This document shows positions 2,613-42,882 of a stretch of DNA of 64,000 nucleotides, piece after piece. Made by a program: the position numbers and the translations under genes. The stretch's first letter is position 1. Each line of letters starts with the position of its first letter. The stretch is from Phaeosaccion multiseriatum (lineage: Eukaryota > Protista > Ochrophyta, other classes): contig OZ218954.1 of assembly GCA_965112735.1 (NCBI GenBank), forward strand, positions 4,154,001 to 4,218,000, given 5' to 3'. The notes under the pieces were generated by a model. The model saw nothing but the letters and a program-made list of their open reading frames with translations. It did no database searches and had not been told where the DNA came from.

Positions 2613-4444
2613 ATGTAAAGTGGAGGAGGCGCTGCAGCTCGTCCAAGAGTGGGAGCAAAAGAAGGGAGGGGAAGGGCGTCGGTGCAGATGCGGGGAAGCG
2701 TGAAGCTGCTGAAGGACTGCGGGCTTGAGATGAGATGAGTGAAATACGATGGCAAGACCGCGCTGACCCAAGCTTCATTAAAGGGCCATTTCGCTGCAGG
2801 AGCTCGTGGAGGAGGGTGCAGATGTGAGCAAATGTGATCGGTGTGAACTTCCTCCCTTAACTGCGGGTTTCGGCCCGTTTTAAGTATGCATCGTCGGAGC
2901 ATGGGGCCAAGGTGGAGGGTAGCTACGCCTTGCACAGTGCCACACAAGCCGGTTGTCGTGAGTCTGTGCGATTGCTACTCAAGCCCGGTGGAAGTTGAAT
3001 GAGGATGCATTGATAGTTACACACCAGCCAGGCGTTGGTGTGTAGAGGTGGACGACGGCAACACCAGCGAAAGAATGGAGGCCCTGTCCTTACTGCTGGA
3101 GCTAGGAGCGGATTTGAACGTCAACCATGACAACGGGTGGTCTCTTTTGCACTTCGCTGCTGAGGGAGGTCACGGTGAACTCATCGACGAGTTCGTCCGT
3201 CGAGGGCTGGAGGTGGACGCGAAGGACTCTTATCAGCGCACTCCTCTTCACCTCGCTGCTATGCACGGCACGTCCACCTGTGTGAAGGCGCTCATCCGCC
3301 TCGGTGCCTCCCTCGACGCTGTGGATTGCTAGACTAAGAGAACGCCACTCCACACTGCCCTGGAGTCCAAGAGGGTGGACGCTTCTGCCGAGCTGATCAA
3401 CGCGGGAGCCAACGTTAACGCCGAGCGAGACTGCAACATTGCACCCCTTCATCTGGCAGCAGCAGCATGAGGCTTGTGTACCTCCTGTTGGAGGCTGAGG
3501 CTGAGGTCGACGCTCTGACCACCAAGGGGAGCAGCCCCTTGATGGTGTGCTTGTCTCCCAGAAAGGGTGACAATGTGTCAGCCCTGTTTGGGTATGGAGG
3601 GTGGTCAGGATCGAAGGAAGATAGGGAGAAGGTGGCGGCACTCCTGCTGGAGATGGGCGCTGCCGTCACCAAGCCAGTCATGGCCTTGGCTGGAGAGAGC
3701 GATTGTGGGGACGTCATTGGGGCGCATTTCAGTAAGGAAAGGGACGCACGAGATACTTCTAATCGTGTTTGCAACACCATAGCTGGCCACATCTCTTCCG
3801 GCTCTGCCTACTCTGAGGCCGCCAAGGAGGGCCGTGTGGTGCGAGTGCGCTGGGTAGACAGGACGACGGGGAAGAGCAAGGACACGCAGTACACACTGAG
3901 CATACCCCTGATGGAGCTGCTGATGAACAAGACTGAGGGAGAGGGAGGGAGCTCTGACGGCTCGGACAGGCATGACACGGCTGCAGGCAGTCTCCCCACA
4001 ATGCTGGACCCGGCGGGGCGTGGCTTCATGGGCATCAAGGGCAAGGCCAAGGACGAGGTGGAGGTGACATTTGACGGAGTGGACTTTACCGAGGAGGGCT
4101 TTGCGGCTGTGGTGCAGTTCGTCACGACGGGTAGCGTCAAGAGCCTGCTTACCCGAGGGCGCCATGGGCAGCTGAGTAGTAGCGGCTGCTCCGAGACGGT
4201 CGGCGGCGGCGGTGGTGAAGTAGGTGGTGGGAGTAGTGAGGCAGGAGGAGAAAGGAAGAGGGAACGCGTGAAGCTGTTCGACGAGGTGAGAGCGAAGCAG
4301 GCTCTGCAGGCAGCGGGCTTCTTCTGCATCGAGGCCATGTCGAGGGAGGTGAAGGCGCTCATGACTCTGTACGGCTTCGAGCTGGCCAAGGAGGCGGAGG
4401 AAGAGGATGAGCCGCCGAGGAAGCGAAGCAGGGAGGATCCTTAG
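2613..4444 (+). pseudogene. Ankyrin-BTB family copy 1, disrupted 5' half, intact 3' ORF 3467-4444
   Basis: Homologous to copies 2 and 6 from ~2625. ATG at 2613 is followed directly by TAA; there are internal deletions, TAG at 3330-3332 and a 7-nt deletion near 3460. AATAAA at ~4500. Confidence 0.85.
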
Positions 4445-4703
4445 CCAGCCCTTGGCATCTTAGCTTGTGGCTTGCTGCTCTGCTCTATGAATACATTTCA
4501 ATAAAATTGGTGATGAAGGGGGGAGAATGGATGTCCGCGACATCGAGGTCGACTTGCAGAATGTGAGTTTTGCGGGGGCTCGACATTTGAGGAGCTGAAA
4601 CTGAAACTGGATCCTCCCCCGACCGCTCCTCTCCCTCCCGACTCCTTGCCCTTGTGCTCCCGCGTGTAGCATGGCGCTGGAAAGTGGGCACTGCTCCTAC
4701 TCT

Positions 4704-7518
4704 ATGGCATTGCTAGTGGTACTGGCATCGGTCACCGTTGGGCGGTGCTGGATCGTTCCACCAATTCCCTCTGCAACACCTTCCAGGCCAACGATGGGAT
4801 CAGCTCATGCATTGCTCAGGTATTTGCCTTCAACAGCAGCAGGACCTCACACGGGCCCTCCGCGCAAGCGAGGTCGGGCAGCGATGACCAGGTCAGTGTA
4901 GAAGAAGGGTAGAGAGGCAGCCAGGCCCAGGGTTTCGTTCCCCTCCTCCTCCCCTCATCTCTTTCTCACACACTCTCTCGTCCCACTGGTACGAGCAGCA
5001 GGCAGCGCATGGCATCGGATCCAGACGGAGAGGATTCAAGCGGCAAGACGGACCAGAGCAGAAAAAGAGGTAAGAAAATAGCCCCCCCCACCCCCCCCTG
5101 CAACACACATGATACCCTATTCCTTTCCAAGCCTCCACCCCTCCCTCAATACCTCTTCCTACGATGCGAATGCCGCTCATACGTCTTGTGCCTCCCCTCT
5201 TGTCGATAAAACAATCACACCCATACAATCACACGGTTCTGCAGAGCGAAACGTGCAGGAGCTGCGAGACTTGACATCTGCGATGGAGTCATCATCATCA
5301 TCGTCGTCGTCGGGAGAGGCCGACGGCGGGAAGGACGGCGGAAACGAGGGGGTTGAGAAGGAGGAGGCGAAGCAACAGGACGAAGACGAATCGTCGTCAG
5401 CTGCGGACGGGCTGCAGGGGTTATTCGACTTCTCCTTGTCGCTGGGGGGACAAGGGGAGGAGGAGGAGGAGGAGGAGAAGGGGGAAGCCGGGGCAGCAGC
5501 AGAAGAAGGAGGAGGAGGGGAAGGAGGCAGCGCTCCAGCCGAAAATGAGGTCTTTCAAGGACTTTCAGACCTCTCTCTGGCTCTAGGGGGGGGGGCACCG
5601 GAGGCGCCCAAGGGCTTGGACTCGACAATAGAGAAGGTGTTCGAAAGCGTGATTGCTGAGGTGAAGGCGGAGGTCGCCGAGAAGAAGAATGCAGCGCTGC
5701 TGGTACGTACGCAAGTATTGCATAGAAAGAGAAGCCGGGGAGGAGAGGAACAGGGACAGGGAGAGAAGGAGAGAGAGAGAAAGAGTTAGAGGTGGGGGAG
5801 GGAGGGGTGTGGGGGGAACAGAGGGAAGGAAAGAGAGGCGCGCTGTGTGTTTTGGGCCCTGAAATCGCACTATACCAAGCCTGTGATGACTGTTTTCTAA
5901 ACCATACCCGACGTTGACTTGTTCGTCTTAACCCTCCTCTCCCCTCCCCTCCCCTCTGCTCCGCTCCTCTCCTCTCCTCTTCCCCCTCCTTACTCTCTCC
6001 TCCTCCCCTCTCCTCTCCTCTCCTCTCTTCCTTCTCTCCCTCTCTGTCTCTGTCTCTCTCTCTTTCTCTCTTTCTCCACTTTCTCTCAGGAGGTGAAGTT
6101 GGAAGAGATAGAGGCGTTAGAACGTGTCAAGGAAGAGCTCGTAGGTACAGTATTTAATGCTCCCCATTACACCTCGTTAACTGTGATCGCTGTAATGCCC
6201 ATTGCGTGAACTGTGATGTGCATGACGTTCAGTATTTGCGTAATTGCGAGATGAAAGTTAACGAGATGGGCATGACTTTCCGTATGAGTTGCTTTGTTTC
6301 AGTGGTGTCCCATGTTCAGCATTAATTGTGCACTCCGCGCTTTCCATCTCCTTTTACTTAATTGGCTCAGACGAGATGGAAGCGTTTCGGAAAGAGCAGC
6401 GAGAGGCCGGGAAGGACACGATGCAGCGGGCGGAGAAGGATCTTGAGGATAGTAATGTAGAGGTCCGGAAGATAGAGGTGAGGGAGGGACGGAGGGAGGG
6501 AGGGACAGAAGGAGGGAGGGACAGAAGGAGGGAGGGAAGGAGAGCAGGAGGGAGGGAAGGAGAAAGGAGATAGAGGAAACGAGAGAGAGAGGAGGGAAGG
6601 AGAGGGGGAGGAGACGAGCGTCTTTCTCCTCCCTCCCTCATCCTCCCTCCGCCCACAACATCCTCCTTGCGACCAAATCCACCTGACCACCGACGCTCTT
6701 CCGTACACACGCACACTCACACACACAAGCACGTATATACATACACACCACCAACGTCGACTGACGCCTCCTACAACAACCCACTCACACCCTGATACAC
6801 GCACGCACACACACATACACACACACGCACACACACTTGCTTTCTTGCTTGTGTGAAGGCGTCCATCGAGGAAGAGATCAAGATGATAAAGGCCCTCGGG
6901 GAGGAGCTTGTCGGAGACGACCCCAGAGAGAGCACGTTTGGCAAGATCCTCGCCAAGCCAGGCTGGCAGAGGGCTGCACTTGCTCTGGCCATTGCCGTCG
7001 CCAACCAAGCAGCCAATCAGGTGGGAGGGCAGGGAGAGGGGAGGGGAAAGGATGGGAGGAGAGGGGAGAGGAGGGGAGGGGGAGGGGAGGGAGCAGGGAT
7101 GGTAGGGGATGGGAGGCGATGGCGAGGAATGGCAAGTCAACTTCTTTGCTTAGGCGGGAATTGCAGGGGAATGGGTGACAGAGCTCGACGGGCAGAGGGA
7201 ATGTATGGCCTGACTCCGTTGCTGCTCCTTGACCGTCCCCTCCCTCCCTACCTACCTACCTACCTACCTCCCCTCACCTTGCCTCCACTCCCTCACCTCC
7301 TTCCTCTCTCCCCTCCCCTCCCCTCCTCTCCCTCTCCCCCCGCCCCCCTTCCCTCCCTCTCCTTCCCTCCCCTTCCCTCGCACCCCAAACAGGGCTACTT
7401 GGTCTGGCAGGACAGAGGGGGTGACCTCACAGTGGCCTTGGCGGAGCTTGCCGTGGTGGGAGGGCTGTTGATTGCGTTTGCCCTGCCCGCTAGTGGCGAT
7501 GATGAGGAGAAGGATTAA
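4704..7518 (+). CDS. Hypothetical protein with signal peptide, coiled-coil and C-terminal hydrophobic segments (possibly plastid membrane)
   Basis: N-terminus MALLVVLASVTVGRC-W. Exons ~5244-5702, 6090-6144, 6371-6477, 6860-7020 and 7393-7518 are linked by GT-AG introns. Ends LAELAVVGGLLIAFALPASGDDEEKD*. 5' exon structure uncertain. Confidence 0.55.
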
Positions 7519-7749
7519 TTGACTGATTGGTTGGTTGGTTGGTTGGTTGGTTGACTGGCTGTCTGACCGCTTGACTCACTGATTCAATGACTGACTGATT
7601 GATTCACTGACTGGTTGACTGATTGGTTGATTCGCAGTCATCTGCACAGAGTTCCGCTGTCGCAAACCCCGTAAGTAGACTTAACAACGGAATTACCGTA
7701 GTACTTCGATCTATGTCTACCTACCTACCTATCTATCGATCGATCTGTC

Positions 7750-8377: not shown

Positions 8378-8415
<38 letters not shown>

Positions 8416-10126: not shown

Positions 10127-10174
<48 letters not shown>

Positions 10175-11488: not shown

Positions 11489-11715
11489 GTCTCTCTTTGG
11501 TCATACCCTTTTCTCTACTTGCACTAGCTGCCAAGTCTAGTTCAGGAGGGTTGGGCTATCTTCATCGTGGAAAGAGAAGGATTTGGGATGCAGGCAAATC
11601 ACTTTGTTTGTGTTTTTTTGCTTTGATGATCGTGGATGTTGTCGTTCCATCTATGCGTGTTGGTTCTTCGATTTGGCCCTAAAGTTGTCACTGATGATCT
11701 CACGTTCTATATTCA

Positions 11716-18332: not shown

Positions 18333-20372
18333 CTAAGGGTCCTCCCTGCTTCGCTTCCTCGGCGGCTCATCCCCCTCCGCCTCCTTGGCCAGCTCAAAGC
18401 CGTAGAGAGTCATGAGCGCCTTCACCTCCCTCGACATGGCCTCGATGCAGAAAAAGTCCGCTGCCTGCAGTGCCTGCTCCGCTCTCACCTCGTCGAACAG
18501 CTTCACGCGCTCCCTCTTCCTTTCTTTTGATGCCTCACCACTGCTCCCACCATCTACTTCACCGCCGCCGCCGACCGTCTCGGAGCTGCGGTCAGTGATT
18601 CCATCCGTGTTCTCTGTGCTCAGCTGCCGACGGCGCCCTCGGGTAAGCAGGCTCTTGACGCTACCCGTCGTGACGAACTGCACCACAGCTGCAAAGCCCT
18701 CCTCGGTAAAGTCCACTCCGTCAAGCGTCACCTCCACCTCGTCCTTGGCCTTGCCCTTGATGCCCATGAAGCCCCGCCCCGCCGGGTCCAGCATGGTAGG
18801 GAGACTGCCTGCAGCCGTGTCATGCCTGTCCGAGCCATCAAAGCTCCCTCCCTCCCCTTCAGTCTTGTTCATCAGCAGCTCCATCAGGGGTATGCTCAGT
18901 GTGTACTGCGTGTCCTTGCTCTTCCCCGTCGTCCTGTCTACCAAGCGCACTCTCACCACACGGCCCTCCTTGGCGGCCTCAGAGTATGCAGAGCCGGAAG
19001 AGATGTGTCCAGCTATGGTATTGCAGACACGATCAGCAGATTCGTGTGCCTGTCTTTCCTGTCTGACATACGCCCCGACAACGTCCCCACAATCGCTCTC
19101 GCCCACCAAGGCCATGACCGGATTGGTGACGGCAGCGCCCATCTCCAGCAGGAGTGCCGCCACCTTCTCCCTCCCTCGCGTGGACCCGCTATACATATAT
19201 ATATATATATATTTGCGAAGAATAATAATAACCTTTGCAGGAGCCATGCACACCATCAAGGGGCTGCTCCCCGTGGTGGTCAGAGCGTCGATCTCAGCCC
19301 CAGCCTCCAACAGGAGGTACGCCAGCCTCATGTTACCCCATGCCGCTGCCAGGTGAAGGGGTGCAACGTTACCCTCTCGCTTGGCGTTCACGTTGGATCC
19401 TGCGTCGATCAGCTCGGCTGCAATGTCCATTTTCCCGCACAGCAGAGCACTGTGGAGCGGCGTGTTGTTCTTGGAATCAGCAGCGTCGAGGGAGGCTCCG
19501 AGGCGGATGAGCGCCTTCACACAGGTGGACATGCCCTTCATAGCAGCGAAGTGCAGAGGAGTGCGCTGATCAGAGTCCTTCACGTCCACCGCCAGCCCTC
19601 GACGGATGAGGACGTCGATAAGTTCACTGTGACCGGCACCAGCGGCCTCGTGCATGAGAGAGCGGCCGAACCGGTCCTTCACGTTCAAATCCGCTCCTGC
19701 CTCTGTCAGCAAGGACAGGGCCTCCAATCTCTCGCTGGTGGTGCTCTTGGTCAAACCAGAGCAGCACAACTTGGCTGGTGTACTTCGGCAGAAGTCGTCT
19801 TTCAGCTCGTTCACCTTCGCACCGGCCCTGAGTAGCATCCTGATAGACACAGGACAGCCGGCGCGGGCTACGTTGTGCAAGGCGTAGCTATCCTCCACCC
19901 TGGCCCCATGCTCCAGAAGGTACGACACGATCTTGGGGTGACTTTCGCTCAAGTAGCTGCCCGCAGCGGCAGCCAAGGGAACTAAGCCATACACATCACA
20001 TTTGTTCACATCTGCACCCTCCTCCACGAGCTCCTGCACCAAAGCGAAATGGCCATGGAATGAAGCTTGGACCAGCGCGGTACTGCCATCATCAGCAGCC
20101 TCTCCTCGTGTCATGTCAATGTCCAGCCCGCAGTCCTTCAGCAGCTTCACGCACCCCCGCATCTGCAAACCCTTCTCCTCCATGGTGATCTTGTCCATGT
20201 CAGCAAGAACGTGCAGAGGCGTGTTGCCCTTCCTGTGAAGGGATTCAAAGTTGATGGATGTGAGCATGGCTGCCAGCAAAAAAGAAAGCTCGTCCACACC
20301 AACGCCCTTCCCCTCATGGCTCCCATCACGCCACTCTTGAATCAGCTGCAGGTTCTTGCTCAAGGCCCACAT
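18333..20372 (-). CDS. Ankyrin-BTB family copy 2, full-length, intronless, 679 aa
   Basis: About 10 ankyrin repeats (TPLHFAA, TPLHSAL, APLHLAA, G.DVN). C-terminal BTB-like segment (VTLDGVDFTEEGFAAVVQFVTTG...QALQAADFFCIEAM) and PPRKRSR tail. Confidence 0.92.
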   Translation of the reverse strand: MWALSKNLQLIQEWRDGSHEGKGVGVDELSFLLAAMLTSINFESLHRKGNTPLHVLADMDKITMEEKGLQMRGCVKLLKDCGLDIDMTRGEAADDGSTALVQASFHGHFALVQELVEEGADVNKCDVYGLVPLAAAAGSYLSESHPKIVSYLLEHGARVEDSYALHNVARAGCPVSIRMLLRAGAKVNELKDDFCRSTPAKLCCSGLTKSTTSERLEALSLLTEAGADLNVKDRFGRSLMHEAAGAGHSELIDVLIRRGLAVDVKDSDQRTPLHFAAMKGMSTCVKALIRLGASLDAADSKNNTPLHSALLCGKMDIAAELIDAGSNVNAKREGNVAPLHLAAAWGNMRLAYLLLEAGAEIDALTTTGSSPLMVCMAPAKVIIILRKYIYIYMYSGSTRGREKVAALLLEMGAAVTNPVMALVGESDCGDVVGAYVRQERQAHESADRVCNTIAGHISSGSAYSEAAKEGRVVRVRLVDRTTGKSKDTQYTLSIPLMELLMNKTEGEGGSFDGSDRHDTAAGSLPTMLDPAGRGFMGIKGKAKDEVEVTLDGVDFTEEGFAAVVQFVTTGSVKSLLTRGRRRQLSTENTDGITDRSSETVGGGGEVDGGSSGEASKERKRERVKLFDEVRAEQALQAADFFCIEAMSREVKALMTLYGFELAKEAEGDEPPRKRSREDP

Positions 20373-29489: not shown

Positions 29490-29547
29490 GCTACTACTAC
29501 TGCTACTGCTACTACCCCTCCTACTCCTACGACTACTGCTGCTGCTG

Positions 29548-29578
<31 letters not shown>

Positions 29579-31661
29579 CGCTACTATTCCTCCTCCTCCA
29601 CCTCCACCACCGCCACCCCCTCCTACTCCTCCACCTCCCCTCCCACCTCCCCCCCCCCTGCCCCCCCAAAACAGTACGCCCAACCCTATGAGTTGGCCAT
29701 GAGTGCCAACAGTGAGTGTATGCAGCTCCCCAAGTGGTCTTTGGAGGAGAAACTCGCCGCCTGTAGGCTGCCATCCGTCTCCCTCCGAGCCGTGAAATTG
29801 CATGGGGCAAGGGTGTTGGGACAGATGAGCATCGAGGCCCTTGTGCACGGCAACGCCACCAAAGAAGGTACGAGTAGAAGGCATCATACGAAGTATACGA
29901 AACAAGCGGAGGATATCGTGGGGGTGGGTTGGGGGGGGGAAGGGGGCAATGGGGAATGGGGATGGCAGTGGAGGGGAAGGGGACGGCAGTGGATGATGAG
30001 ATTCTTAGCCCTGAGAACCGATATCGACGCGCTCCAAGAGCGCCCACCATCACCCCTCTTTACCTCCCCTCCCCCACCCGTCCACTGCCATCCATCCGTG
30101 CAGAGGCAAGAGCTCTCTTGGATATCGTCACCGATGCTCTGGGGGATGGTGGAGGAGGAGGGGCAGCAGTTGGTGATACAGCAGGTGTGGACAAGGCTAA
30201 GAGGGGCGTATGCCCTCTGCCAGAGGCGCTTTACCCGGACACACGTACGGTATGCCTGGATGAGGGCAAGGCCTACACATTTAGAAAGAAGGCTTCCAAC
30301 CCTGAGGAGCCCTGCAGCGCGGTGGAGGTGAGGGAGGGGAGGATGGCAATGGATGGGTGGAGGAGGAGGAGGGGGAAGAGGAGGAAGATGGCAGTGGATG
30401 AGAGGAGGAGGAGGAGACAGGGACAGGGACGAGGTCTCGAAAGCACAGCAACGGGGGGGGCGGGCGAATCCTGGATTCATCCCTCGTTCCACCTGCCTTG
30501 AGTTTGTCCTTCGTCTCCCCACGCCGTCTCCTATCGCATCCCCGTCTTTCCTTCTGTGCCCTCTCTATCCCTGCCTCTCTTCCTCTGTTCTCTCTCCCCT
30601 CTCTCTCCCTCTCCCCTCTCTCTCTGCCCTTTCTCTCTCTCTCTCTCCCTCTCTCTCTACGTTCTCCATCCTCTCTGCCTCTTTCTATGTCTCTCTCCCT
30701 CTCTTCTCTCGTGTGTGCATGTGTGTGCGTGCGTGCTTACAGGTGATTTACCAGGCGGGGCCGGAGACCATGGAGCTTGCCGCTCGCCTTCAGCTCCTCA
30801 TGCACCTCATCAATGTACGGCTGCCTCCCTTATGCATCTGTCTGTCTTGCCGGCCCATATGCCTCTGTCTTGCCTGCCCATATGCCTCTGCCTGTCTTCT
30901 CTGTAACTGCCTATCTGCCGCTCGCGCCTTCAGCTCGTCATGCACCTCATCAGTGTAGTGCTGCCTGCCCATATGCCTCCGTCCGTCTTCCCTCTCTTTG
31001 TGTGCGTGCCTCTATCTTTCTGTCTCTCTGTCTCTCATTGTCTGTCACTCTCTGTGTGTCTGTCCTCCGTCTCTTCGTAAGTCTCTCTCGCTCTCTGTCT
31101 CTGTGTGTCTGTCTTTCTGTGCGCCTCTTTTCCTTCTCTCACCCTCCCACCCCCCCCCCCTCCCTAAGGACAAGGCCTTTGAGCAGCTGAGGACGAAGGA
31201 GCAGCTGGGCTACATTGTGTTTACAGGCACAGTGAGTCAGGCAGACTTTATCCTCGGTGCTCGCTTTATCGTCATGAGCAGCACCTCCGGCCCTCTCTAT
31301 TTGGAGGAGAGAATAGAGGCATTCATAGACGGCTTCCAGGTAGGAGGGTACGGTATTAGTGTGATTGGAGTGGTTGTGCATGAGTAGGGAGGGAGGGAGG
31401 GCGGGAGGGGGTGGGAGGGGGGAGGGAGGGAGGGAGGGAGGGACGGAGGGAGCGAGGAGGTAGGGAGGAAGGTAGAGAGGGAGGGAGGGAGGGAGGGAGG
31501 GAGGGAGGGAGGGAGGGAGGGAGTGAGTGAGTGAGGTAGAATGGATGAAGCAATGGAAAGAAGAATGTGTCGGTCATACACGCCCCCCATTCACCCCCAC
31601 CCTCCGTCCCTGCGTCGCTGCCTTTGCCTCTTATTTTTTTTCTTTTGACCTGACCTGTATT

Positions 31662-31713
<52 letters not shown>

Positions 31714-32467: not shown

Positions 32468-32742
32468 TGTGACTCATGTGAGGTGTCAGCCGGAGCTTTG
32501 CCTGGGGCCTTTGTGTTGGGTGTTGAGGGACGAGGTAGGGTGATGGGAGAGAGAGGAGAGGGGCGGGAGGGGGGCTATGATCTCACTGACTGGCTGATGT
32601 GAGCCTTTCGCGCCAGGGCCTAGCCTTGTTTGGGCGGGAGTGGAGGGGGGCGACCAAAGAAAGAGCGGGAGGAGAGAATATAGAGAGGGCGAAGGAAGAA
32701 CGGAGTGAAAGGGCGACGAGGGAGGGGAGGGAGGAGGAGGCG

Positions 32743-33244
32743 AGGGAAGGAGCTCTGACGCCCCCAACGGGCATGATACGGCAGCAGGCAGTCTCTCCCC
32801 ACCATGCTGGACCCGGCGGGGCGTGGCTTCATGGGCAGCAAGAGCAAGGCCAAGGACGAGGTGGAGGTGACGTTTGACGGCGTGGACTTTACCGAGGAGG
32901 GCTTTGCGGCTGTGGTGCAGTTCGTCACGACGGGTAGCGTCAAGAGCCTGCGTACCCGAGGGCGCCATGGGCAGCTGAGCAGTAGCAGCAGCTCCGAGAC
33001 GGTCGGTGGTAGCGGTGACGGAAGAGATGGTGGTAGTAGTAGTGAGCCATCAGCAAAGAGCAAGAGGGAGCTCGTGAATCTGTTTGACGAGGTGAGAGCG
33101 GAGCAGGCTCTGCAGGCAGCGGGCTTCTTCTGCATCGAGGCCATGTCGAGGGAGGTGAAGGCGCTCATGACTCTGTACGGCCTCGAGCTGGCCAAGGAGG
33201 CGAACGACGAGCCGCCGAGGAAGCGAAGCAGAGAGGGCCCGTAG
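32743..33244 (+). pseudogene. Ankyrin-BTB family copy 3, 3' fragment only (ORF 32804-33244)
   Basis: Homology starts at ~32743 out of a purine-rich tract. There is a 2-nt insertion before the ATG at 32804, then an open BTB C-part and PPRKRSR tail; AATAAA at ~33276. Confidence 0.85.
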
Positions 33245-33526: not shown

Positions 33527-35369
33527 CAAGTGGCTGAAGGAGTGTGGGCTGGACATTGATGCGAGACGAGGAGGAGAGGTAGCTGACGAATATTTGGACG
33601 TTAGGGATAGGACAACTCCGCTGATCCTAGCTGCCGTGGAGGGCCACTTCGCTTTGGTTCAGGGGCTTGTGGAGGAGGGTGCAGATGTGAACATTGGTGA
33701 TTGGGGTGGCTGTGTTCCTTTGGCTGCCGCTGCAGGTGGGGCCCGCGCGTGGGACTGTAGTGGGTGGGAAAGTGACCCCATAATCGTGTCGTACCTTCTG
33801 GAGCATGGGGCCAGGGTGGAGGGAAGCTCCGCCTTGCACGGTGCCGCAGAAACTGGTTGTCCTGAGTCTGTTAGCATGCTTCTCAAGGCCGGGGCCAAGG
33901 TAGAGGAAAGACACTATAATACCACCCCAGCCCAGTTTTGCTGTGAGGGGCAGGGCGAGGGCGGCACCGAGAGATTGGAGGCCCTGTCCTTGCAAATGGA
34001 GGCAGGAGATGATTTAAACGTGAAGATTGAGGAGGTTGGCCGGTCTCTCTTGCACACTGCTGCTGAAGCCGGTCACAGTGAACTCATCGACGAGCTCGTC
34101 CGTCGAGGGCTGGAGTTGGACACGAAGGACTCTAATCAGTACACTCCTCTTCACCTCGCTGCTGTTACGGGCAAGTCCACCTGTGTGAAGGCACTCATCC
34201 GCCTCGGTGCCTCCCTCGACGCTGTTGATTCCAGGGGTAACACGCCGCTCCACTTGGCTCTCAGTGCGTTTACCCTCCTGGTGGACATTGCAGCCGAGCT
34301 GATCGACGCGGGAGCCAACGTGAACGCCAAGCTAGACGACAACTTTGCACCCCTTCATCTGGCAGCGGCACGGGGCAGCATGGAGCTTGCGTACCTCCTG
34401 TTGGAGGCTGGGGCTGAGGTCGACGCACTGACCACCAAGGAGTTCAGCCCCTCGATGGTGTGCATGGCTCCTGCAAAGGCCGAAGCTTCATGCCTGGCCT
34501 TCACAGGGTCCAAGCGAGGGAGAAAGAAGGTGGCGGCATTCCTGCTGGAGATGGGCGCTGCCGTCACCAAGTCAGTCATGGCCCTGGCTGGAGAGAGCGA
34601 TTGTGGGGACGTCATTGAAGCTTTCGTCAGTGCCGCGAGAGACGCACAAACTGCTTCTGATGGTGTTTGCAATACGGTGGCTGGGCATTTCTCCGGCTCT
34701 GCCTACTCTGAGGCCGCCAAGGAGGGCCGTGTGGTGCGAGTGCGCTTGGTAGACAGGACAACGGGGAAGAGGAAGGACACGCAGTACACACTGAGCATAC
34801 CCCTGATGGAGCTACTGATGAACAAGACTGAGGGAGAGGGAGGGAGCTCTGACGGCCCGGACAGGCATGCTACGGCGGCAGGCAGTCTCCCCACCATGCT
34901 GGACCCGGCGGGGCGTGGCTTCATGGGCATCAAGAGCAAGGCCAAGGACGAGGTGGAGGTGACCTTTGACGGAGTGGACTTTACCGAGGAGGGCTTTGCG
35001 GCTGTGGTGCAGTTCGTCACGACGGGTAGCGTCAAGAGCCTGCTTACCCGAGGGCGTCGTGGGCAGCTGAGCACGGAGAGCGGAGGTGGTACGAATAGTA
35101 GCAGTAGCAGCAGCAGCTCCGATGCAGTCAGTTGCGGCGGTTATGGTGTAAGTAGTAGTGAGGCAGCAGGAGAGAGGAAGAGGGAGCGCGTGAAGCTGTT
35201 CGACGAGGTGAGAGCGCAGCAGGCCCTGCAGGCAGCGGCCTTTTTCTGCATCGAGGCCATGTCGAGGGAGGTGAAGGCGCTCATGACTCTGTACGGCTTC
35301 GAGCTGGCCAAGGAGGGGGAGGAGAAGGATGAGCCGCCGAGGAAGCGAAGCAGAGAGGAGGACCCTTAG
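33527..35369 (+). CDS. Ankyrin-BTB family copy 4, uninterrupted frame but lacking the N-terminus and an upstream ATG
   Basis: Homology starts at KWLKECGLDID (~33527) with an in-frame stop just upstream, and the frame is then open to 35369. It may be spliced to an unseen exon or be a recent truncation. Confidence 0.8.
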
Positions 35370-36369
35370 TATGTCAGCCTTCCTCTCACTGACTCATATA
35401 TTGATGGGTTCCGAAGAGTGGCGTGAGGAGAGCTGAAGCTACGATCGTAACCGTAGGAGGGTAACAACAGGTGCCATTTGTTGAACCATCACCTCGTCCA
35501 CTGTCAAACGGATGACAACCAACGTTACACAGCCCAAGACAAGACCAACAAGCAAGGTGTCTTCCAAGCAAGCCCAAGTTCAAAGTTCGAAGTAAATCAT
35601 CAAGGCTGAGAGAGAAGCAAGAACAAAGGAGACAACTCCTCTGAGTGGGCACCTACTGTAGTGGGTAAATAATGCTAGAGTGAGTCAGTGGGTAAATAAT
35701 ATGGTTATAATCATAACTGGAGTGGAGTGAGTGGTTAAGGGCTTGGAAGAAGCTCTCCCATACACGGCAACGTCGTGTCGTAGTCTACACATTTCCCCAC
35801 AAGCATTGTACACCATCGTCGAGCCATAGAGTGCCATTCTTTCCATGTCGATGGCGCTCTGTCGCTCGACTCACCAAACCTCGATTGGCAATCATTGGCT
35901 GCGGACACCGAGTACCATTCTCTGTTGTACTTAGTACGTCAAGCCAAAGAGTGCCGAATGCCTTCCTTCTGCTGCGATTGTAGCAATGGCATTCCATGGA
36001 TGGACCGCCCGACACTCTCTACACAGGTCGACAGGCACGTCTCTCCAATTGGCGAACCAAAGACAATGGGCACACGCAGATGAAACTAAACCAAATTAAC
36101 TATTTAAAAAAAAAAAAAAAAGTAAAAAAAAAAAAGAAGGGAGAAGCGGCATGCGGCCGAAAGCCGAGAAGCCAGGGGCTGGGCGGCGACCAGCAGAAGG
36201 CAGTCACCAGTGGGAAAGAGCGACAAGCCAGAAGCCAGAGGCGGCCTACGGCCGAAAGCCGAGAAGCCAGCGCTGGCCTGCGGCCAGAAGCCTATCGCCC
36301 AGAAGCCAGAGGCCAGAGAAATAGCTTTTGGGGCCGACGACTCGATCCCAGCACACTTGCACAGTCCGT

Positions 36370-37236
36370 TCACAGCTCTACAACCTTCTCATCCCTGACA
36401 GCATCATCAGCCTCGACATCACTCCCCGCAGATGATGCTGATGATGATGTCTGCAGCAAGGCGTAGAAGCTCGGGATGGCGCCTGCTTCGCCATCGCCCA
36501 ACGCAATCGTAGTAATGGTGGTGGGTCCCGCTGCGATGGTCACCCACTTGGCAGGGTCGGAGAACCACTGCTCATGGGACTCGGCTCCGAACCCGTGTGG
36601 CATGATTCCATGCTGTATGACTTTGTGCATCCCTGCTGGCAAGCCGGAGGCGCTATCCGAAGACTTGGTCAACAAGTACTCGAGCGCAGTGCCGTCTGTT
36701 TCATACAAGTAAAAACTACCCTTTTCGCCAAGCGCAGAGTGCAAGTTGCCCACCGCAGCACCCATGTGCTGAGCCTTGATAAGATGAAGCACCCCACGAG
36801 CGTGAACGTTCACGTCACCAAGCCGAGTGTGCAAGGCCTCGACGCCGGCGGTGTCGGTCATGTCGAGAACCTCAAACTCGACATTCGACAGACCCGCACA
36901 TGTCGTCTTCTCGGCAAGTGCCACAGCAGCCTGTGATACATCTGCGCAAATGACACGGTCGAAATGCTGGGCAAGCCAGGCACTCCGGCGGCCATTGCCA
37001 CACCCAAAGTCGAGCAGCGGAAGAGTTGTATCCCCGTGGAGCTTGAGAAGCTCAAGGGCTTGCCCCATCATGTGGTCATCTTCGCTGTCCCAAATCACCT
37101 GGCCGCCGACGCCTGCACTCTCGACGGACGACCAGTAGCTGTCCCACTGGCCTCGATAGTCAGAAGAAGAGTAGCCGATGAGTTTGTAGAATGCAATGAA
37201 GGGTGCAGCCCGGAGCATTCGCCATATGCTGGGCAT
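36370..37236 (-). CDS. Class I SAM-dependent methyltransferase, intronless, bacterial-like
   Basis: Motif I LLDFGCGNGR, post-I VICADVSQAAVALA, VEFEVLDM and RGVLHLI; first ATG at 37236. Confidence 0.88.
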   Translation of the reverse strand: MPSIWRMLRAAPFIAFYKLIGYSSSDYRGQWDSYWSSVESAGVGGQVIWDSEDDHMMGQALELLKLHGDTTLPLLDFGCGNGRRSAWLAQHFDRVICADVSQAAVALAEKTTCAGLSNVEFEVLDMTDTAGVEALHTRLGDVNVHARGVLHLIKAQHMGAAVGNLHSALGEKGSFYLYETDGTALEYLLTKSSDSASGLPAGMHKVIQHGIMPHGFGAESHEQWFSDPAKWVTIAAGPTTITTIALGDGEAGAIPSFYALLQTSSSASSAGSDVEADDAVRDEKVVEL

Positions 37237-37509
37237 TTTATCTCCCGCCGGCTGCGTTAGATCCTCTCCCGCCGTGAGGAGGTGAAGAAAGTGGAGCAAC
37301 AACAGTCCCTATTATCCAACGTACGTCTATTGTCACTTGCTCTTGGACGAACACCCAGACGTACTTCTGTTGAGAGGAAGAGATTCTGAGTTTTTGTTTT
37401 TGTTTTATCACGAAGATGCATGCGAGAATCCGAGATGTGCTTGACACGATAGGACTCACAGATTGAATCACCAACGCATTCCAAACCTTCAAATGTGGTG
37501 AAGGGCGGG

Positions 37510-38771
37510 TTGCGGGCTGAACGCTGATGCGAAACGAGGAGAGGACGTTTACGGTATTCTTGGTAACGGGAAGGCTGCGCTGGTCCTGGCCGCACTGAAA
37601 GGCCACTTCGCATTGGTGGGGGGGAGGGTTTGATTTGTCTTGTCTTGTTCCCTTGGCTACCGCAGCTGGAGGTAGGAACCCTTGGACGAAACCACAGACG
37701 GTGAGTGAACCCATGATCATATCATACCCGTTGAGGCATGGGGCCAGGATGGAGGACAGTAAGGCCTCAGGTGCGGATTCTCCTCAAGGCTGGAGCGGAG
37801 CTTGAAGAAGTAGACGGATAAATTACATGACGCCAGTCCAGCGTTGCTGTTCTGCGGTGGATAAGGAGAGCACCACCATCGCCACCAACGAGAACTGGGC
37901 CAACTCGGTCAGGAGGGCCCAAGGAAGATAGGGAGAAGGTGGCGGCCCTCCCGCTGGAGATGGGCGCTGATGTCAGCAAGCCTGCCATGGCCTTGGCTGG
38001 AGAGAGCGATTGTGGGAACGTTATCGGGGCGCATTACAATAAGGAAAGGGACGCACTCGCCTCTGCTCATCGTGTTTGCAACACCATAGCTGGACATTTA
38101 TTTGGCTCTGCCTACTCTGAGGCCGCCAAGGAGGGCCGTGTGGTGCGAGTGCGCTTGGTAGACAGGACAACGGGGAAGAGCAAGGACACGCAGTACACAC
38201 TGAGATACCCCTGATGGAGCTGCTGATGAACAAGATTGAGGGAGAGGGAGGGAGCTCTGACGGCTCAGACAGGCATGACACGGCTGCAGGCAGTCTCCCC
38301 ACCATGCTGGACCCGGCGGGGCGTGGCTTCATGGGCACCAAGGGCAAGAGCAAGGACGAGGTGGAGGTGACGTTTGACGGAGTGGACTTCACCGAGGGGG
38401 GATTTGTAGGTGTGGTGCAGTTCGTCACGACGGGTGGCATCAAGAGCCTGCTTACCCGAGGGCGCCGTCGGCTGCTGAGCACAGAGAACACGGATGGAAT
38501 CATTGGCAGCAGCTCCGAGACGGTCGGCGGCGGCGGTGGTGAAGTAGATGTTGGGAGTAGTGGTGAGGCAGCAGGAGAAAGGAAGAGGGAGCGCGTGAAG
38601 CTGTTTGACGAGGCGAGAGCGCAGCAGGCCCTGCAGGCAGCGGGCTTCTTTTGCATCGAGGCCATGTCGAGGGAGGTGAAGACCCTCATGACTCTGTACG
38701 GCTTCGAGCTGGCCAAGGAGACGGAGGAGAGGGATGAGCCGCCGAGGAAGCGAAGCAGGGAGGACCCTTAG
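37510..38771 (+). pseudogene. Ankyrin-BTB family copy 5, heavily deleted ankyrin region, intact ORF 38214-38771
   Basis: Relics ALVLAALKGHFALV (~37575) and LRHGAR (~37735). A large deletion lies before KEDREKVAA (37921), and a 1-nt deletion at ~38205 (ctgagatacccc vs ctgagcatacccc). Confidence 0.85.
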
Positions 38772-39794
38772 TTTGCTATACGTTCCCTCTGCTGTTCTAA
38801 AGATTGCTTGCACTTTATGGTGTATTGAATGGTGCGAGAGCAAGAGCTTCAACCTACGACCGTAACAGTAAGAGAGGAATCAAACATCCTATTCGTATAA
38901 CCACCACCTCGTCAAACGCCAAAAGGATGGCACCCAAAGGGACACAATCACAGCCCACCGCTGTGGTGAAAGTCTGTACGTTTCCTTCACTTCGTACGCT
39001 GCGTCAGATACCTCTCATAGACGGCAAGAGCCTCAAAGCATTTACACATACGTACGTTAACGAAGGTCGTCCGCCCGAGGGCGAAGAAGGACCGCTCAAC
39101 ACCACTCCACTGCCAAAGAAGGGCAGGCCGAAGAGGGGGGGGCAAGAGAGGAAACACCGGAGGTCGGTCTCTCTCTCTCTCTGTCTCTCTCTCTTCTTTC
39201 TTCCTCTCCCCGCCAGTGTCTCTCTGTCTGTGTCATACCGTATGCGCCGCAATAGTCCTCATCCTAAAGAGTCGCCCCGTGGAGCCCCACCCACATGCGC
39301 GCCCACCTCCACGCGTCCGTCCATTGATTTGTGCAATCGTATCCTCCAGCCAACAGAGCGACAGAGCTTCCGTCGTCAGCAGCGTTGTCACCATCATCGG
39401 CAACAGTAGCAGCCGCCGCGTCTCTCCAGCAGGGTAGGTTTGATTAACGGAGTGCCCTAGTCTGGCCTATCGCCTTGAGCTCGAGCTCCTTGGCCCAAGA
39501 CCAAGCGGCGGAGAGAAAGACCAGGGTGGGGGGGGGGGGGGGCGCAGGCAATACCACCAGCAGCCCGCACCCACTCTCCTTTCTCCCCCTCCACATCAAT
39601 CCATCGCCTCTCACCTGGCAAGCAGATGGACAGACAAGCAGGTAGGTAGGTCTGAAGGGCATTGAATGGCATCTTTTCCAGCGCCCCCCCCCTCGGAGCA
39701 GAGCTCCCCTCTCCACCGGGGCTGTCTGCCGGTCGCTCGCTCGCTCGGTCTCGCTGAACGCCTCTACCCCCTCCATTCACCTAGCTACCGCTAG

Positions 39795-40520: not shown

Positions 40521-40809
40521 GCCCTCTGCTTTTTCTTCTCTCTGTTGATACAAACACGAATCCAGACATACAGGGTGGGAAATTTGAAATTGGTTGGGGC
40601 ATCCCCCCTGGATCCGCCCTATTTATTTTTTTTGCTTTTTTTTCCCCTCCTTCCTTCCCCCCCACCCCCCTCCCTTCCTCTTCCCTTCTCTTTCTTGACC
40701 TGATAGCTCGCTAAATCACCCAACCCGGCCAGACAGGGGGTGCTCGGTGCGGATCTCCGACGCGGGGACGCCCCGGCAAGGGCACTTAAACGAAAGAAGG
40801 GAGACAACC

Positions 40810-42882
40810 ATGGTGACAATGGGAAAAGCGCTGCAGCGGATTCAAGAGTGGCGTAATGGGAGCAGCAGCAGTGAGGGGAAGGGCGTTGGAGTGGACGAGG
40901 TTTCGGTTTTGCTGGCAGCCGTTCTGTCAACGATCGACTTTGACTCGCTGAAGAGGAAGGGTCACACGCCTCTTCACGCTCTTGCTGAGATGGACAATAT
41001 CGCCATGGAGGAGATGGGGGTGCAGATGCGGGGAAGCGTGAAGCTGCTGAAGGACTGCGGGCTGGATATTGACATGACACGAGGCGAGGCTGATGATGAT
41101 GATGGTAATCGTGATCATGTGGTTGATTATGATGATGGCAGGACCGCGCTGGTCCAAGCTTCATTGCAGGGCCATTTCGCTTTGGTGCAGGAGCTCGTGG
41201 AGGAGGGTGCAGATGTGAACGAAGGTGATCCGTGCGACTTTCTTCCCTTGTCTGCAGCTGCGGGTTTCTTTAGTGGAGCTGATAAGGATGCATCGTACGG
41301 AAGTCACCCCATGATCCTTTCGTACCTTCTGGAGCATGGGGCCAGGGTGGAGGATAGCTACGCCTTGCACAACGTAGCCGGCGCCGGCTGTCCTGTGTCT
41401 ATCAGGATGCTACTCAGGGCCGGGGCCAAGGTGAACGAGCTGAATGAAGATGGCCACGGAAGAACACCAGCCCAGTACTGCTGTGAGGGGCAGGGCAAGG
41501 GCAGCACCGCCGAGAGATTGGAGGCCCTGTCCTTGCTGCTAGAGGCAGGAGCTAATTTGAACGTGAAGGATGAGGACGGGTGGTCTCTTTTGCACTTCGC
41601 TACTGAGGGAGGTCACGTTGAACTCATCGACTTGCTCGTCCGTCGAGGTCTGGCGGTCGATACGAGGGACTCTCATCAGGGCACTCCTCTTCACTTTGCT
41701 GCCGATTCTGGCAGATCCACCTGTGTGAAGGCGCTCCTCCGCCTTGGTGCCTCCCTCGACGCTGCTGATTACCAGAAGAACACGCCGCTCCACTGTGCGC
41801 TGCAGCACGGGAAGGTGGACGTTGCTGCCGAGCTGATCGACGCAGGATCCAACGTGAACGCCAAGCGAGACGGTAACGTTGCACCCCTTCACCTGGCAGC
41901 GGCACTGGGCAGCATGAGGCTGGCGTACCTCCTGTTGGAGGCTGGAGCTGAGGTCGACGCACTGACCACCACGGAGTTCAGCCCCTTGATGGTGTGCATG
42001 TCTCCTGCAAAGGACGACATCAAAGTTTCGGATGTATGTGTCGGGTCCACTCGAGGGAGGAAGAAGGTGGCGGCACTCCTGCTGGAGATGGGCGCTGCCG
42101 TCACCAATCCGGTCATGGCCTTGGTGGGCGAGAGCGATTGTGGGGACGTCATTGGAGCGTATGTCAGCAAGGAAAGAGACGCACACGAATCTGCTGATCG
42201 TGTTTGCAACACCATAGCTGGACACATCTCTTCCGGCTCTGCACACTCGGAGGCCGCCAAGGAGGGCCGTGTGGTGCGAGTGCGCTTGGTAGACAGGACA
42301 ACGGGGAAGAGGAAGGACAAGCAGTATGCACTGAGCATACCTCTCATGGAGCTGCTGATGGACAAGACTGAGGGAGAGGGAGGGAGCTCTGACGTCCCGG
42401 ACAGGCATGATACGGCTGCAGGCAGTCTCCCCACCATGCTGGACCCGGCGGGGCGGGGCTTCATGGGCCTCAAGGGCAAGGCCAAAGACGAGGTGGAGGT
42501 GACGTTTGACGGAGTGGACTTCACCGAGGAGGGCTTTGCAGCTGTGGTGCAGTTCGTCACGACGGGTAGCGTCAAGAGCCTGCTTACCCGAGGGCGCCAT
42601 GGGAAGCTGAGCAGTAGCAGCAGCTCTGAGACGGTCGGTGGTAGCGGTGACGGAAGAGGAGGTGGGAGTAGTAGTGAGGCATCAGGAAAGAGCAAGAGGG
42701 AGCGCGTGAAGCTGTTTGACAAGGTGAGAGCGGAGCAGGCTCTGCAGGCAGCGGACTTCTTCTGCATCGAGGCCATGTCGAGGGAGGTGAAGACGCTCAT
42801 GGATCTGTACGGCTTCGAGCTGGCCGAGGAGGCGGAGGAAGAAGATGAGCCGCCGAGGAAGCGAAGTAGGGAGAACACATAA
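40810..42882 (+). CDS. Ankyrin-BTB family copy 6, full-length, intronless, 690 aa from ATG 40810
   Basis: Colinear with copy 2 from the N-terminus (LQRIQEWR) to the PPRKRSR tail. Confidence 0.92.
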   Translation: MVTMGKALQRIQEWRNGSSSSEGKGVGVDEVSVLLAAVLSTIDFDSLKRKGHTPLHALAEMDNIAMEEMGVQMRGSVKLLKDCGLDIDMTRGEADDDDGNRDHVVDYDDGRTALVQASLQGHFALVQELVEEGADVNEGDPCDFLPLSAAAGFFSGADKDASYGSHPMILSYLLEHGARVEDSYALHNVAGAGCPVSIRMLLRAGAKVNELNEDGHGRTPAQYCCEGQGKGSTAERLEALSLLLEAGANLNVKDEDGWSLLHFATEGGHVELIDLLVRRGLAVDTRDSHQGTPLHFAADSGRSTCVKALLRLGASLDAADYQKNTPLHCALQHGKVDVAAELIDAGSNVNAKRDGNVAPLHLAAALGSMRLAYLLLEAGAEVDALTTTEFSPLMVCMSPAKDDIKVSDVCVGSTRGRKKVAALLLEMGAAVTNPVMALVGESDCGDVIGAYVSKERDAHESADRVCNTIAGHISSGSAHSEAAKEGRVVRVRLVDRTTGKRKDKQYALSIPLMELLMDKTEGEGGSSDVPDRHDTAAGSLPTMLDPAGRGFMGLKGKAKDEVEVTFDGVDFTEEGFAAVVQFVTTGSVKSLLTRGRHGKLSSSSSSETVGGSGDGRGGGSSSEASGKSKRERVKLFDKVRAEQALQAADFFCIEAMSREVKTLMDLYGFELAEEAEEEDEPPRKRSRENT

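Follow-up and report, generated by a model that had tools for sequence, protein, structure and literature searches.

The MATH-BTB adaptors of nematodes and grasses join a variable binder to a constant cullin-docking module (PMC4091423, PMC6883508). In poxviruses, ankyrin-repeat adaptors are coupled to Cullin-1 through an F-box (PRANC) and to Cullin-2 through a BC-box (PMC4353913, PMC9414399, PMC6232478). Here, we describe six copies (c1 to c6) of an ankyrin-repeat gene in an algal genome, found in a 64,000-nt stretch of DNA (the window). Our favoured reading, to which we assign a probability of about 0.55, is that the intact copies c2 and c6 are modular adaptors with a variable ankyrin groove and a constant BTB-fold tail, and that the copies belong to a lineage-specific family of single-exon genes that evolves by birth and death within a cluster.

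Copies and their surroundings

The two long ORFs were used as tblastn queries against the window, which revealed six paralogous stretches within 40 kb (Table 1), in agreement with the number and positions given in an earlier note on this DNA; the peptides quoted there from the variable repeats are present in the translations. Two of the six copies (c2 and c6) are intact and three are dead. The view that all copies are intronless genes was therefore upheld for c2 and c6 and not for c1 and c5, which are frameshifted, for the fragment c3 or for the start-less c4. Both c2 and c6 run uninterrupted from ATG to stop and are collinear over their full length with an outside homologue, and we thus regard them as intronless. 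The proteins encoded by c2 and c6 consist of ten ankyrin repeats followed by a helical linker, the BTB-fold domain with its two disordered insertions and a basic tail. An AT-rich stretch in c2 was considered as a short intron and rejected because a GT..AG intron would be 44 nt long and disrupt the reading frame; additionally, the other copies carry unrelated in-frame sequence at the same place.

The matched stretch of c1 extends from 2613/2682 to 4441, with an ATG-TAA at 2613, an in-frame TAG at 3330-3332 and four frame changes (near 2794, 2880-2897, 2989-3021 and 3455-3464). That of c3 extends from 32739/32792 to 33241 and is 91% identical to c6 at the DNA level. The c4 frame is open from 33513, with its first in-frame ATG only at 33876, and the ankyrin part of c5 is 35-50% identical and contains stops. 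The dead and truncated copies, as well as the probable shaping of the pattern by exchange between paralogues (concerted evolution), had been missed in the earlier note.

Table 1. Coordinates of the copies and their features in the window
Feature	Position	Strand	Description	Basis
c1	2613..4444	+	ankyrin half a pseudogene; last 325 codons (3467-4444) open	
c2	18336..20372	-	intact single-ORF gene, 679 aa	ORF and translation
c2 ankyrin region	19128..20240	-	R1-R10, about aa 45-415	Pfam Ank_2/Ank; mapped repeat anchors
c2 predicted BTB/POZ-fold core	18405..18959	-	about aa 472-656, two disordered insertions	AF2 model; Foldseek and VIA
c2 (TA)9 microsatellite	19195..19212	-	in frame, within the hypervariable loop of R10, the final repeat	
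c3	32739..33244	+	fragment; BTB tail only, final ~150 codons	
c4	33528..35366	+	5'-truncated, ~77 N-terminal residues missing; remainder open	
c5	37511..38771	+	decayed copy; 1-nt deletion near 38204	
c6	40810..42879	+	intact single-ORF gene, 690 aa	full-length AF2 model
c6 ankyrin region	40945..42093	+	about aa 46-428	Pfam; AF2 pLDDT >90 over most of aa 170-400
c6 predicted BTB/POZ-fold core	42271..42807	+	aa 488-666	E-E-H-H-E-H-H-H-H in full-length model
c6 PPRKRSR basic tail	42850..42870	+	NLS-like; putative function	alignment of six copies

Ordinary genes, namely those for a glycosyl hydrolase, a fasciclin and a methyltransferase, are found nearby. Splicing, which had been ascribed to the neighbours in general, was confirmed for at least one of them, a minus-strand Glyco_hydro_cc gene that is divided among three or more ORF blocks. 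None of 20 neighbouring ORFs was identified as a viral or transposon gene, and the GC content of the copies equals that of their surroundings. Past the coding sequence, c4 and c5 have 134 nt of 3' flank in common, and no other flank homology was found between copies. Similarity ends at the stop codon, and no common 3' UTR, poly(A) or terminal repeats were found among the copies; a transposon or retrocopy origin was rejected on the absence of common flanks, poly(A) and terminal repeats. Exact-protein look-ups of c2 and c6, intended to reveal transcripts or other assemblies, returned no record.

When the copies were compared, the nearest neighbour changed along the gene. Informative sites supported the three topologies in the ratio 46/26/18, and the clustering of conflicting sites was marginal (PHI-like p 0.06-0.10). 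Because similarity ends at the ends of the coding sequence and the site patterns conflict, gene conversion among the copies is suggested by these sequence comparisons.

Variable positions of the ankyrin region

The N-terminal regions of c2, c6 and c4 matched Pfam Ank_2 with E-values of 1e-36 to 1e-51 and Ank with 1e-37 to 1e-41, with 1e-51 reached in c2; these tandem matches, together with modelled helix pairs with pLDDT >90, identify them as ankyrin repeats. Per-column counts in c2, c4 and c6 bore out the description of a constant scaffold with a variable hairpin and helix 1. In particular, the average number of distinct residues peaked at repeat positions 3, 5, 13 and 14 (2.2-2.5 of 3), and next in rank came positions 2 and 33 (of 33 per repeat); it was 1.1-1.3 of 3 at positions 6-9, 11 and 12. 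Positions 2, 3, 5, 13, 14 and 33 are, as we take it, those randomised in DARPin design. The proposed correspondence to the DARPin positions was supported: evolution at these codons is 4-5 times faster than at the scaffold codons that lie between them (p = 1e-15).

Selection was analysed with these six positions per repeat, chosen in advance, as the face codons; the tests rest on three usable sequences, c2, c4 and c6, of which c4 is possibly non-functional. The NG86 dN at face codons was 0.50-0.68, compared with an ankyrin-region dS of 0.22-0.41, and the within-class NG86 omega at face codons was 0.95-2.0. In the codon maximum likelihood analysis with a fixed partition and a shared silent rate, omega_face was 1.89 (p = 5e-4 vs 1), and omega_other, for the rest of the ankyrin region, was about 0.45-0.47 (face vs other, p = 1e-15). 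After gapped columns or R3/R5 were dropped, or the gene was halved, omega_face was 1.9-3.0 (p 0.012 to 9e-5). When face codons were given their own rate, omega_face was 1.69, with p = 0.13 against omega = 1. The expectation that dN/dS would exceed 1 on the ankyrin face was thus supported with a shared silent rate (omega 1.9-2.1, p = 5e-4 to 9e-5) and not with a class-specific one, the excess being significant only if face codons take the silent rate of neighbouring codons. Point estimates of omega_face exceeded 1 (1.7-3.0) in every partition and pair, c1 included, and the pseudogene c1 showed the same face/other pattern as the other copies. The tail omega was 0.34-0.40 between the intact copies and 0.46-0.80 in comparisons with the fragments c3 and c5. 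Overall, the scaffold (omega about 0.45) and the tail (about 0.34) are under purifying selection, and the six canonical target-contact positions of each repeat accumulate replacements as fast as silent changes or faster (omega 1.7-2.1).

C-terminal tail

The C-terminus was nearly constant, as the earlier note had stated: its 255 aa were 83-88% identical between copies, and DEPPRKRSRE was invariant in the alignment of all six. Searches by sequence recovered no BTB domain from this tail. Pfam BTB (PF00651 and relatives) gave no match to the 255 aa even at E<=10, and Pfam also gave no match to PRANC or F-box in the C-terminus or to BACK/3-box after the BTB region. A profile of 10 family members compared with PDB sequences retrieved ankyrin chains only and no BTB; phmmer of PDB sequences yielded nothing beyond weak kinase EF-hand noise; and a word-indexed homologue search with the tail gave no match.

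The AF2 domain model of the tail (mean pLDDT 58, core elements 70-86) revealed a core with the order E-E-H-H-E-H-H-H-H, which recurred in the full-length c6 model. Both models contain the B1-B2-A1-A2-B3-A3-A4-A5 arrangement of a BTB fold, a three-stranded sheet with five helices, and one additional helix follows A5 in the c6 model (H654-666). Of the 50 top-scoring chains in VIA, about 45 have the BTB/Skp1/T1 fold. The Z-scores were 9.5 for KLHL26, 8.3 for KEAP1, 7.8 for BTBD6 (102 of 109 residues at 2.9 Å) and 7.5 for vaccinia A55; across KLHL26, KEAP1, BTBD6, KCTD and BCL6 they were 7.5-9.5, and nearly the entire target domains were covered. The best Foldseek matches, with weak E-values of 0.06-0.4, were KEAP1, SPOP and Skp1, and the pdb and BFVD lists consisted mostly of BTB/Skp1 proteins. 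As the structural matches were almost exclusively BTB, we conclude that the tail, as modelled, is a very divergent BTB-fold domain; the fold assigned in the earlier note is therefore backed by the AF2 model and two independent structure searches. A candidate phi-x-E contact site for Cullin-3 lies just before helix A4. It reads F-D-E in five of the six copies and F-D-K in c6, and it differs among the outside relatives; its placement follows what we take to be the arrangement in KEAP1 and KLHL3.

Relatives outside the cluster

A profile search of 1.84e9 representative proteins identified four relatives with ankyrin repeats and the same tail, all from one metagenome (ENA assembly ERZ1426853). P0001 aligned collinearly with c2 along 618 aa (31% identity), and its 11.8-kb contig contained ten closely packed unspliced genes, Pox_VLTF3 among them; the contig of P0002 contained 15 small packed genes, including a RING gene. 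At least two of the four relatives lie on giant-virus-like contigs, a call made from precomputed Pfam labels and gene density. The viral connection that had been raised for this family is consistent with these relatives, the only ones found. No confirmed relatives were found in IMG/VR scans with the family alignments and P0001 or in a JGI metagenome scan with one of these alignments, and a word-indexed homologue search with the P0001 tail retrieved only P0001 itself. A tree of the family, drawn for the direction of virus-host transfer, had long branches and an unsupported branching order. In the literature on ankyrin-BTB proteins in giant viruses or algae, we found no description of this family.

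Possible function and alternative explanations

If the intact copies are modular adaptors, each paralogue would hold a different protein in its variable ankyrin groove, and all paralogues would be linked to a single shared partner by the constant BTB-fold tail. This partner would most plausibly be the Cullin-3 N-terminal domain, so that the gripped target would be ubiquitinated; BTB-mediated self-association may precede cullin coupling, and the basic PPRKRSR tail may send the protein to the nucleus. Diversity would arise from duplication, from point changes under diversifying selection and from exchange between paralogues. The family may also have been exchanged between the algal lineage and giant viruses, in either direction, in which case viral proteins would be the likeliest targets or rivals. 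Taken together, these observations hint at a changeable recognition system in host-virus conflict. A more far-reaching proposal, which we consider doubtful, is that the alga and giant viruses use the shared ankyrin-BTB family against each other, with a host receptor repertoire opposed to viral copies. On the host side, recombining and diversifying intracellular receptors would bring viral proteins to a Cullin-3 ligase, which would amount to an innate-immune-like system of natural DARPin-type binders; on the virus side, divergent copies could act as mimics, decoys or counter-adaptors.

The variability could instead reflect relaxed constraint only, with exposed groove positions drifting at an omega of about 1 in a decaying family that has no repertoire function. 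The half of the copies that are dead or truncated, the p of 0.13 under the class-specific rate and the within-class NG86 omega at face codons (0.95-2.0) agree with such drift, as does the loop of the last repeat, which varies by microsatellite slippage; the (TA)9 in c2 means that unconstrained stretches exist. However, the point estimates of omega_face lie above 1 throughout, the excess is significant with silent rates from codons only a few bases away, and constraint is evident in both the scaffold and the tail of these genes. We therefore regard relaxed constraint only as unlikely; if it were correct, the cluster would be an ordinary set of decaying paralogues, notable only for how divergent its BTB domain is. 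We also consider it very improbable that the copies are remnants of endogenised giant-virus genes, mobile-element cargo or retrocopies of no use to the alga. Such an origin would suit intronless copies in an intron-rich genome, outside relatives on giant-virus-like contigs and broken copies whose 3' part survives, as in 5'-truncated retrocopies, but it is opposed by the purifying selection on scaffold and tail in the intact copies, by their unremarkable GC content, by the lack of viral or transposon genes among the neighbours, which include ordinary genes, and by the missing common 3' ends and terminal repeats.

With regard to the tail, BTB folds also serve in oligomerisation or partner docking, as in BTB-ZF proteins, KCTD/T1 and NPR1-like regulators. 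The tail could be such a module that does not engage Cullin-3, and the family could comprise nuclear scaffolds or regulators. KCTD, T1, BCL6 and Skp1 differed by no more than about 2 Z units from the KLHL/KEAP1 chains, so the fold alone predicts no cullin binding, and the unmatched BACK/3-box and the variation of the candidate phi-x-E site between copies and relatives point the same way. Nevertheless, the best structural matches are the Cullin-3 adaptors KLHL26, KEAP1 and BTBD6, and, by analogy, expanded adaptor families such as MATH-BTB, and poxviral ankyrin proteins too, typically join a variable binder to a constant cullin dock; we thus consider a non-cullin tail to be quite unlikely. If the modular adaptor reading is true, a protist would possess a germline-encoded, variable intracellular recognition repertoire of ankyrin repeats wired to the ubiquitin system, and the counterpart family in giant viruses would open the conflict between alga and giant virus to experiment. 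Ankyrin plus BTB would then join ankyrin/F-box and ankyrin/BC-box among virus/host cullin couplings, and the family would offer natural, evolution-tested binder scaffolds.

Comparison with known systems

Ankyrin repeats are also combined with BTB in ABTB1/BPOZ, ABTB2, BTBD11, IBTK and plant NPR1, some of which act with Cullin-3. These proteins showed no homology to the family in the search of 1.84e9 proteins and, unlike it, they have a canonical Pfam BTB. The animal ankyrin-BTB proteins and NPR1 have other domain orders or numbers, and we know of no hypervariable multigene families among them. The MATH-BTB adaptors resemble the present family in their multigene clusters, fast-evolving substrate-binding domain, constant BTB and birth-and-death turnover, although no sequence homology was detected between the two. 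In contrast to the MATH-BTB adaptors, the binder here consists of ten ankyrin repeats N-terminal to the BTB, and the BTB is unrecognisable by sequence, contains two long disordered insertions and is a putative rather than an established Cullin-3 binder.

The poxviral ankyrin adaptors share N-terminal ankyrin repeats, a C-terminal cullin-docking module (putative here), multiple copies and fast evolution with this family. They are encoded by large DNA viruses, and the relatives found here include one on a contig with a poxvirus-type VLTF3. However, the C-terminus here is a predicted BTB fold of ~190 residues, whereas theirs is an F-box-like or BC-box motif of ~30 residues, and the present family resides in the genome of a cellular organism, an alga, where it has expanded. 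DARPin libraries differ in that the copies described here are natural paralogues with an attached effector domain, with irregular repeats that carry indels in R3-R5 and with variability also at positions 4 and 10; nonetheless, the most variable positions of this family are those that are randomised in the libraries.

Organization of the gene cluster

The window consists of GC-rich (55-60%) eukaryotic DNA. Its two longest ORFs, belonging to copies c2 and c6 of the ankyrin and BTB-fold family, encoded paralogues with 74% identity, and a tblastn search of the window with both ORFs recovered all six copies (c1-c6, numbered by position) that the earlier note had placed there. Of the six copies, two were intact genes and one was truncated; the other three were dead, and each of them had kept the 3' part, which encodes the tail (the C-terminal ~255 residues after the ankyrin repeats). 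Frame changes in c1 were located near 2794, 2880-2897, 2989-3021 and 3455-3464, with an in-frame TAG at 3330-3332. We regard c2 and c6 as intronless because they are single ORFs that are collinear with an outside homologue over 618 residues; the adjoining glycosyl-hydrolase gene occupied three or more separate ORF blocks, as expected from the description of these copies as intronless among spliced genes. The cluster is real, and the earlier observation was mostly correct.

The domains found in 20 other ORFs of the window (Glyco_hydro_cc, PT repeat, fasciclin and methyltransferase) were all ordinary. The multi-exon gene near the ankyrin genes was spliced and otherwise ordinary. A 147-bp unit occurred in three tandem copies that were situated between, and in part overlapped, two of its glycosyl-hydrolase exon blocks; this arrangement could be an exon-intron duplication. 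The methyltransferase gene between c4 and c5 appears to be unspliced. We also observed a 50-bp-period tandem array by self-blastn, scattered low-complexity stretches of ~130-300 bp with a mutual identity of 75-90% and register shifts of 4 nt, which are tetranucleotide-type microsatellites, and a second low-complexity set.

Coordinates of the gene copies, neighbouring genes and repeats in the window
Feature	Position	Strand	Remarks
c1	ATG-TAA start at 2613		dead; last 325 codons (3467-4444) open
c2	18333-20372 (ORF)	minus	intact, ATG to stop, 679 aa
c3	32739-33244		dead; last ~150 codons only
c4	33528-35366		truncated, lacking first ~77 residues; open only from 33513; first in-frame ATG 33876
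c5	37511-38771		dead; ankyrin half decayed, 1-nt deletion near 38204
c6	40747-42882 (ORF), ATG 40810	plus	intact, ATG to stop, 690 aa from ATG
(TA)9 microsatellite of c2	19195-19212	minus	in frame, last-repeat loop
Shared 3' flanks of c4/c5	35370-35531, 38772-38946		134 nt, 70% identity
Methyltransferase gene	36370-37302	minus	single ORF, 310 aa; Methyltransf_25 (SAM-dependent methyltransferase), E 6e-10
Multi-exon gene	45493-50151	minus
Signal peptide and Cys-rich N-terminus	49600-50151	minus	multi-exon gene
Glyco_hydro_cc	48717-49256, 47138-48514	minus	multi-exon gene; at least two further ORF blocks
Long (PTPPPTN)n linker	about 47621-48025	minus	multi-exon gene
Fasciclin domain	45493-46161	minus	multi-exon gene
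147-bp unit x3	49168-49608		95-97% identity
50-bp-period array	25980-26333		96-98% identity
Tetranucleotide-type stretches	6475-6611, 16534-16700, 26484-26725, 27500-27653, 31386-31550, 52950-53250, and others
Second low-complexity set	15354-15800, 57280-57630, 61750-61946		3-nt register

Structure of the ankyrin region and the tail

Pfam revealed only ankyrin families, at about residues 45-415 (E down to 1e-51), and the full-length model of c6 had a pLDDT above 90 over the greater part of the ankyrin stack. The copies showed no relation to one another in either the sequence or the length of the loop within the last repeat; that of c2 contained an in-frame (TA)9 microsatellite and an AT-rich stretch, reading ..VIIILRKYIYIYMYS.., in an otherwise GC-rich gene. 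This loop looks unconstrained rather than 'CDR-like'.

The earlier note had assigned the C-terminus to the BTB family, which held for the fold but not for the sequence. With the threshold relaxed to E<=10, Pfam still found no domain in the final ~255 residues, and a family sequence profile gave no BTB match among PDB sequences. The six tails were aligned with four outside relatives, and the c2 tail was folded; the model had a mean pLDDT of 58 (70-86 in core elements) and the order strand-strand-helix-helix-strand-helix-helix-helix-helix, broken by two disordered insertions. The c6 full-length model showed the same order, with strands at 488-495, 501-509 and 561-566 and helices at 510-518, 539-544, 573-585, 623-635, 638-650 and 654-666. 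When the c2 tail was compared with 48,161 PDB representatives using VIA-align, BTB-fold chains made up about 45 of the best 50 rows, including the KLHL26 BTB (Z 9.5), KEAP1 (Z 8.3), BTBD6 (Z 7.8; 102 of 109 residues at 2.9 A), KCTD9/15 (Z 7.7), BCL6 (Z 7.5) and vaccinia A55 (Z 7.5), and Skp1 matched with Z 5.8-6.2. Foldseek E-values against PDB and BFVD were weak (0.02-0.4), and BTB and Skp1 proteins dominated both lists. By its modelled structure, the tail is a very divergent BTB/POZ-fold domain. The F-D-E just before helix A4 in five copies, F-D-K in c6 and variable in the outside relatives, is a candidate phi-x-E contact placed by reference to KEAP1 and KLHL3, and a lead only. The motif DEPPRKRSRE at the end of the tail, invariant in all six copies and missing from the outside relatives, fits the K-R-x-R monopartite nuclear-import pattern and would suggest a nuclear location.

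Divergence of the groove codons

Before variation was examined, 56 groove codons were fixed by mapping positions 2, 3, 5, 13, 14 and 33 of the repeat, which are those randomised in DARPins, onto the ten repeats (R1-R10) via the TPLH-type motif. Nei-Gojobori estimates gave dN of 0.50-0.68 at these positions compared with dS of 0.22-0.41 for the whole ankyrin region, an omega of ~0.5 at other ankyrin codons, and dS of 0.22-0.27 with an omega of ~0.36 in the tail. A GY94-type codon likelihood model (F3x4, three-taxon tree, branch lengths common to the interleaved classes) gave an omega of 1.89 for groove codons and 0.47 for the others (p=1e-15 between classes; p=5e-4 for groove against 1), and 0.34 for the tail. 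The groove estimate was 2.11 (p=9e-5) with gap-free columns only, 1.89 (p=0.002) without the indel-rich repeats R3 and R5, 3.03 in R2-R5 and 1.88 (p=0.012) in R6-R10. The same contrast was found in the in-frame stretch of the pseudogene c1 (groove dN 0.54-0.76, dS 0.21-0.28). Variability was highest at positions 3, 5, 13 and 14, followed by 10, 4 and 2, and position 33 varied no more than position 1. Tail omega was 0.35-0.40 among the intact copies and c1 and 0.46-0.80 against c3 and c5, as expected of dead fragments.

Synonymous differences within groove codons were also raised, and when this class was allowed a separate rate multiplier (r=1.27), its omega was 1.69 and not significantly above 1 (p=0.13). 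Of the proposal that target-binding positions are diversified, the rate contrast stands, whereas the groove omega significantly exceeds 1 only when silent rates are shared with neighbouring codons. It is secure that the groove positions change 4-5 times faster than the codons around them, and at a rate equal to or above the neutral one. Diversifying selection is the best reading and, with three sequences, probable.

Probable exchange between paralogues

Similarity among the copies at the DNA level began at the ATG and ended at the stop codon. Sensitive blastn between copies found no homology in the flanks beyond the CDS apart from 134 nt on the 3' side of c4 and c5. This was the only such pair, which suggests that the duplication behind it took in the 3' flank as well; neutral flanks would be expected to remain alignable, since dS in the CDS was only 0.2-0.4. 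The nearest neighbour switched along the gene, and parsimony-informative sites were distributed 46/26/18 over three four-taxon topologies, with marginal clustering of conflicting sites (p 0.06-0.10). Together, the CDS-bounded similarity and the conflicting sites suggest that gene conversion has probably homogenised the copies within the limits of the CDS. Exchange alone does not create the omega contrast because groove and scaffold codons are interleaved; micro-conversion that spared the groove codons could have raised their silent divergence.

Relatives outside the genome

A six-tail profile matched only four (P0001-P0004; E 8e-15 to 1e-7) of 1.84 billion representative proteins, all from a single ENA metagenome assembly, ERZ1426853, and all with ankyrin repeats followed by the tail motifs ML.P..GF, DG.DFT..GF and ALQAA.FFC as in the algal copies. 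No further relatives were found in the IMG/VR and JGI metagenome scans or by word-indexed homologue search. The 11.8-kb contig of P0001 carried ten closely packed genes, including the late transcription factor Pox_VLTF3, a hallmark of Nucleocytoviricota, and the 10.3-kb contig of P0002 carried fifteen small packed genes, one of them for a RING protein. P0001 matched c2 (31% over 618 aa, 201 bits) better than it matched the paralogues from its own sample (at most 141 bits). Because the four proteins came from one assembly and shared only 22-28% identity with each other, the presumed viral side also has several copies of the family, and these are highly divergent. A tree of the family and these relatives did not resolve the branching order, and hence gave no direction of transfer.

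Proposed mechanism and comparison with known systems

The most likely mechanism, to which we assign a probability of about 0.55, is a modular adaptor. The ankyrin groove, specific to each paralogue, would bind differing protein targets, and the constant BTB-fold tail would link all of them to a common partner, which is most plausibly Cullin-3 and would serve their ubiquitination. Duplication, point changes under selection and exchange among the copies would generate new specificities, and disused copies would decay.

Relaxed constraint alone at exposed positions is favoured by the groove estimate under the class-specific rate, and we consider it unlikely beside the probable diversifying selection. 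It is improbable that the tail serves oligomerisation or docking to a partner other than Cullin-3. That the copies are functionless viral or mobile leftovers is highly improbable; among the 20 other ORFs of the window, none carried viral or transposon-like domains.

In the literature searched, we found no description of an ankyrin and BTB-fold family common to an alga and giant-virus-like contigs. The modular adaptor would have counterparts. The combination of a variable receptor with a constant cullin binder is established in MATH-BTB families (PMC4091423, PMC6883508), and the algal family likewise pairs a variable ankyrin part with a constant tail. Among poxviral proteins, those of the BTB-Kelch type bind Cullin-3 (PMC3185573), and those of the ANK/F-box and ANK/BC types carry N-terminal ankyrin repeats and a C-terminal cullin-system module (PMC4353913, PMC9414399, PMC6232478), an arrangement similar to that of the algal proteins, in which the C-terminal module is a BTB fold.
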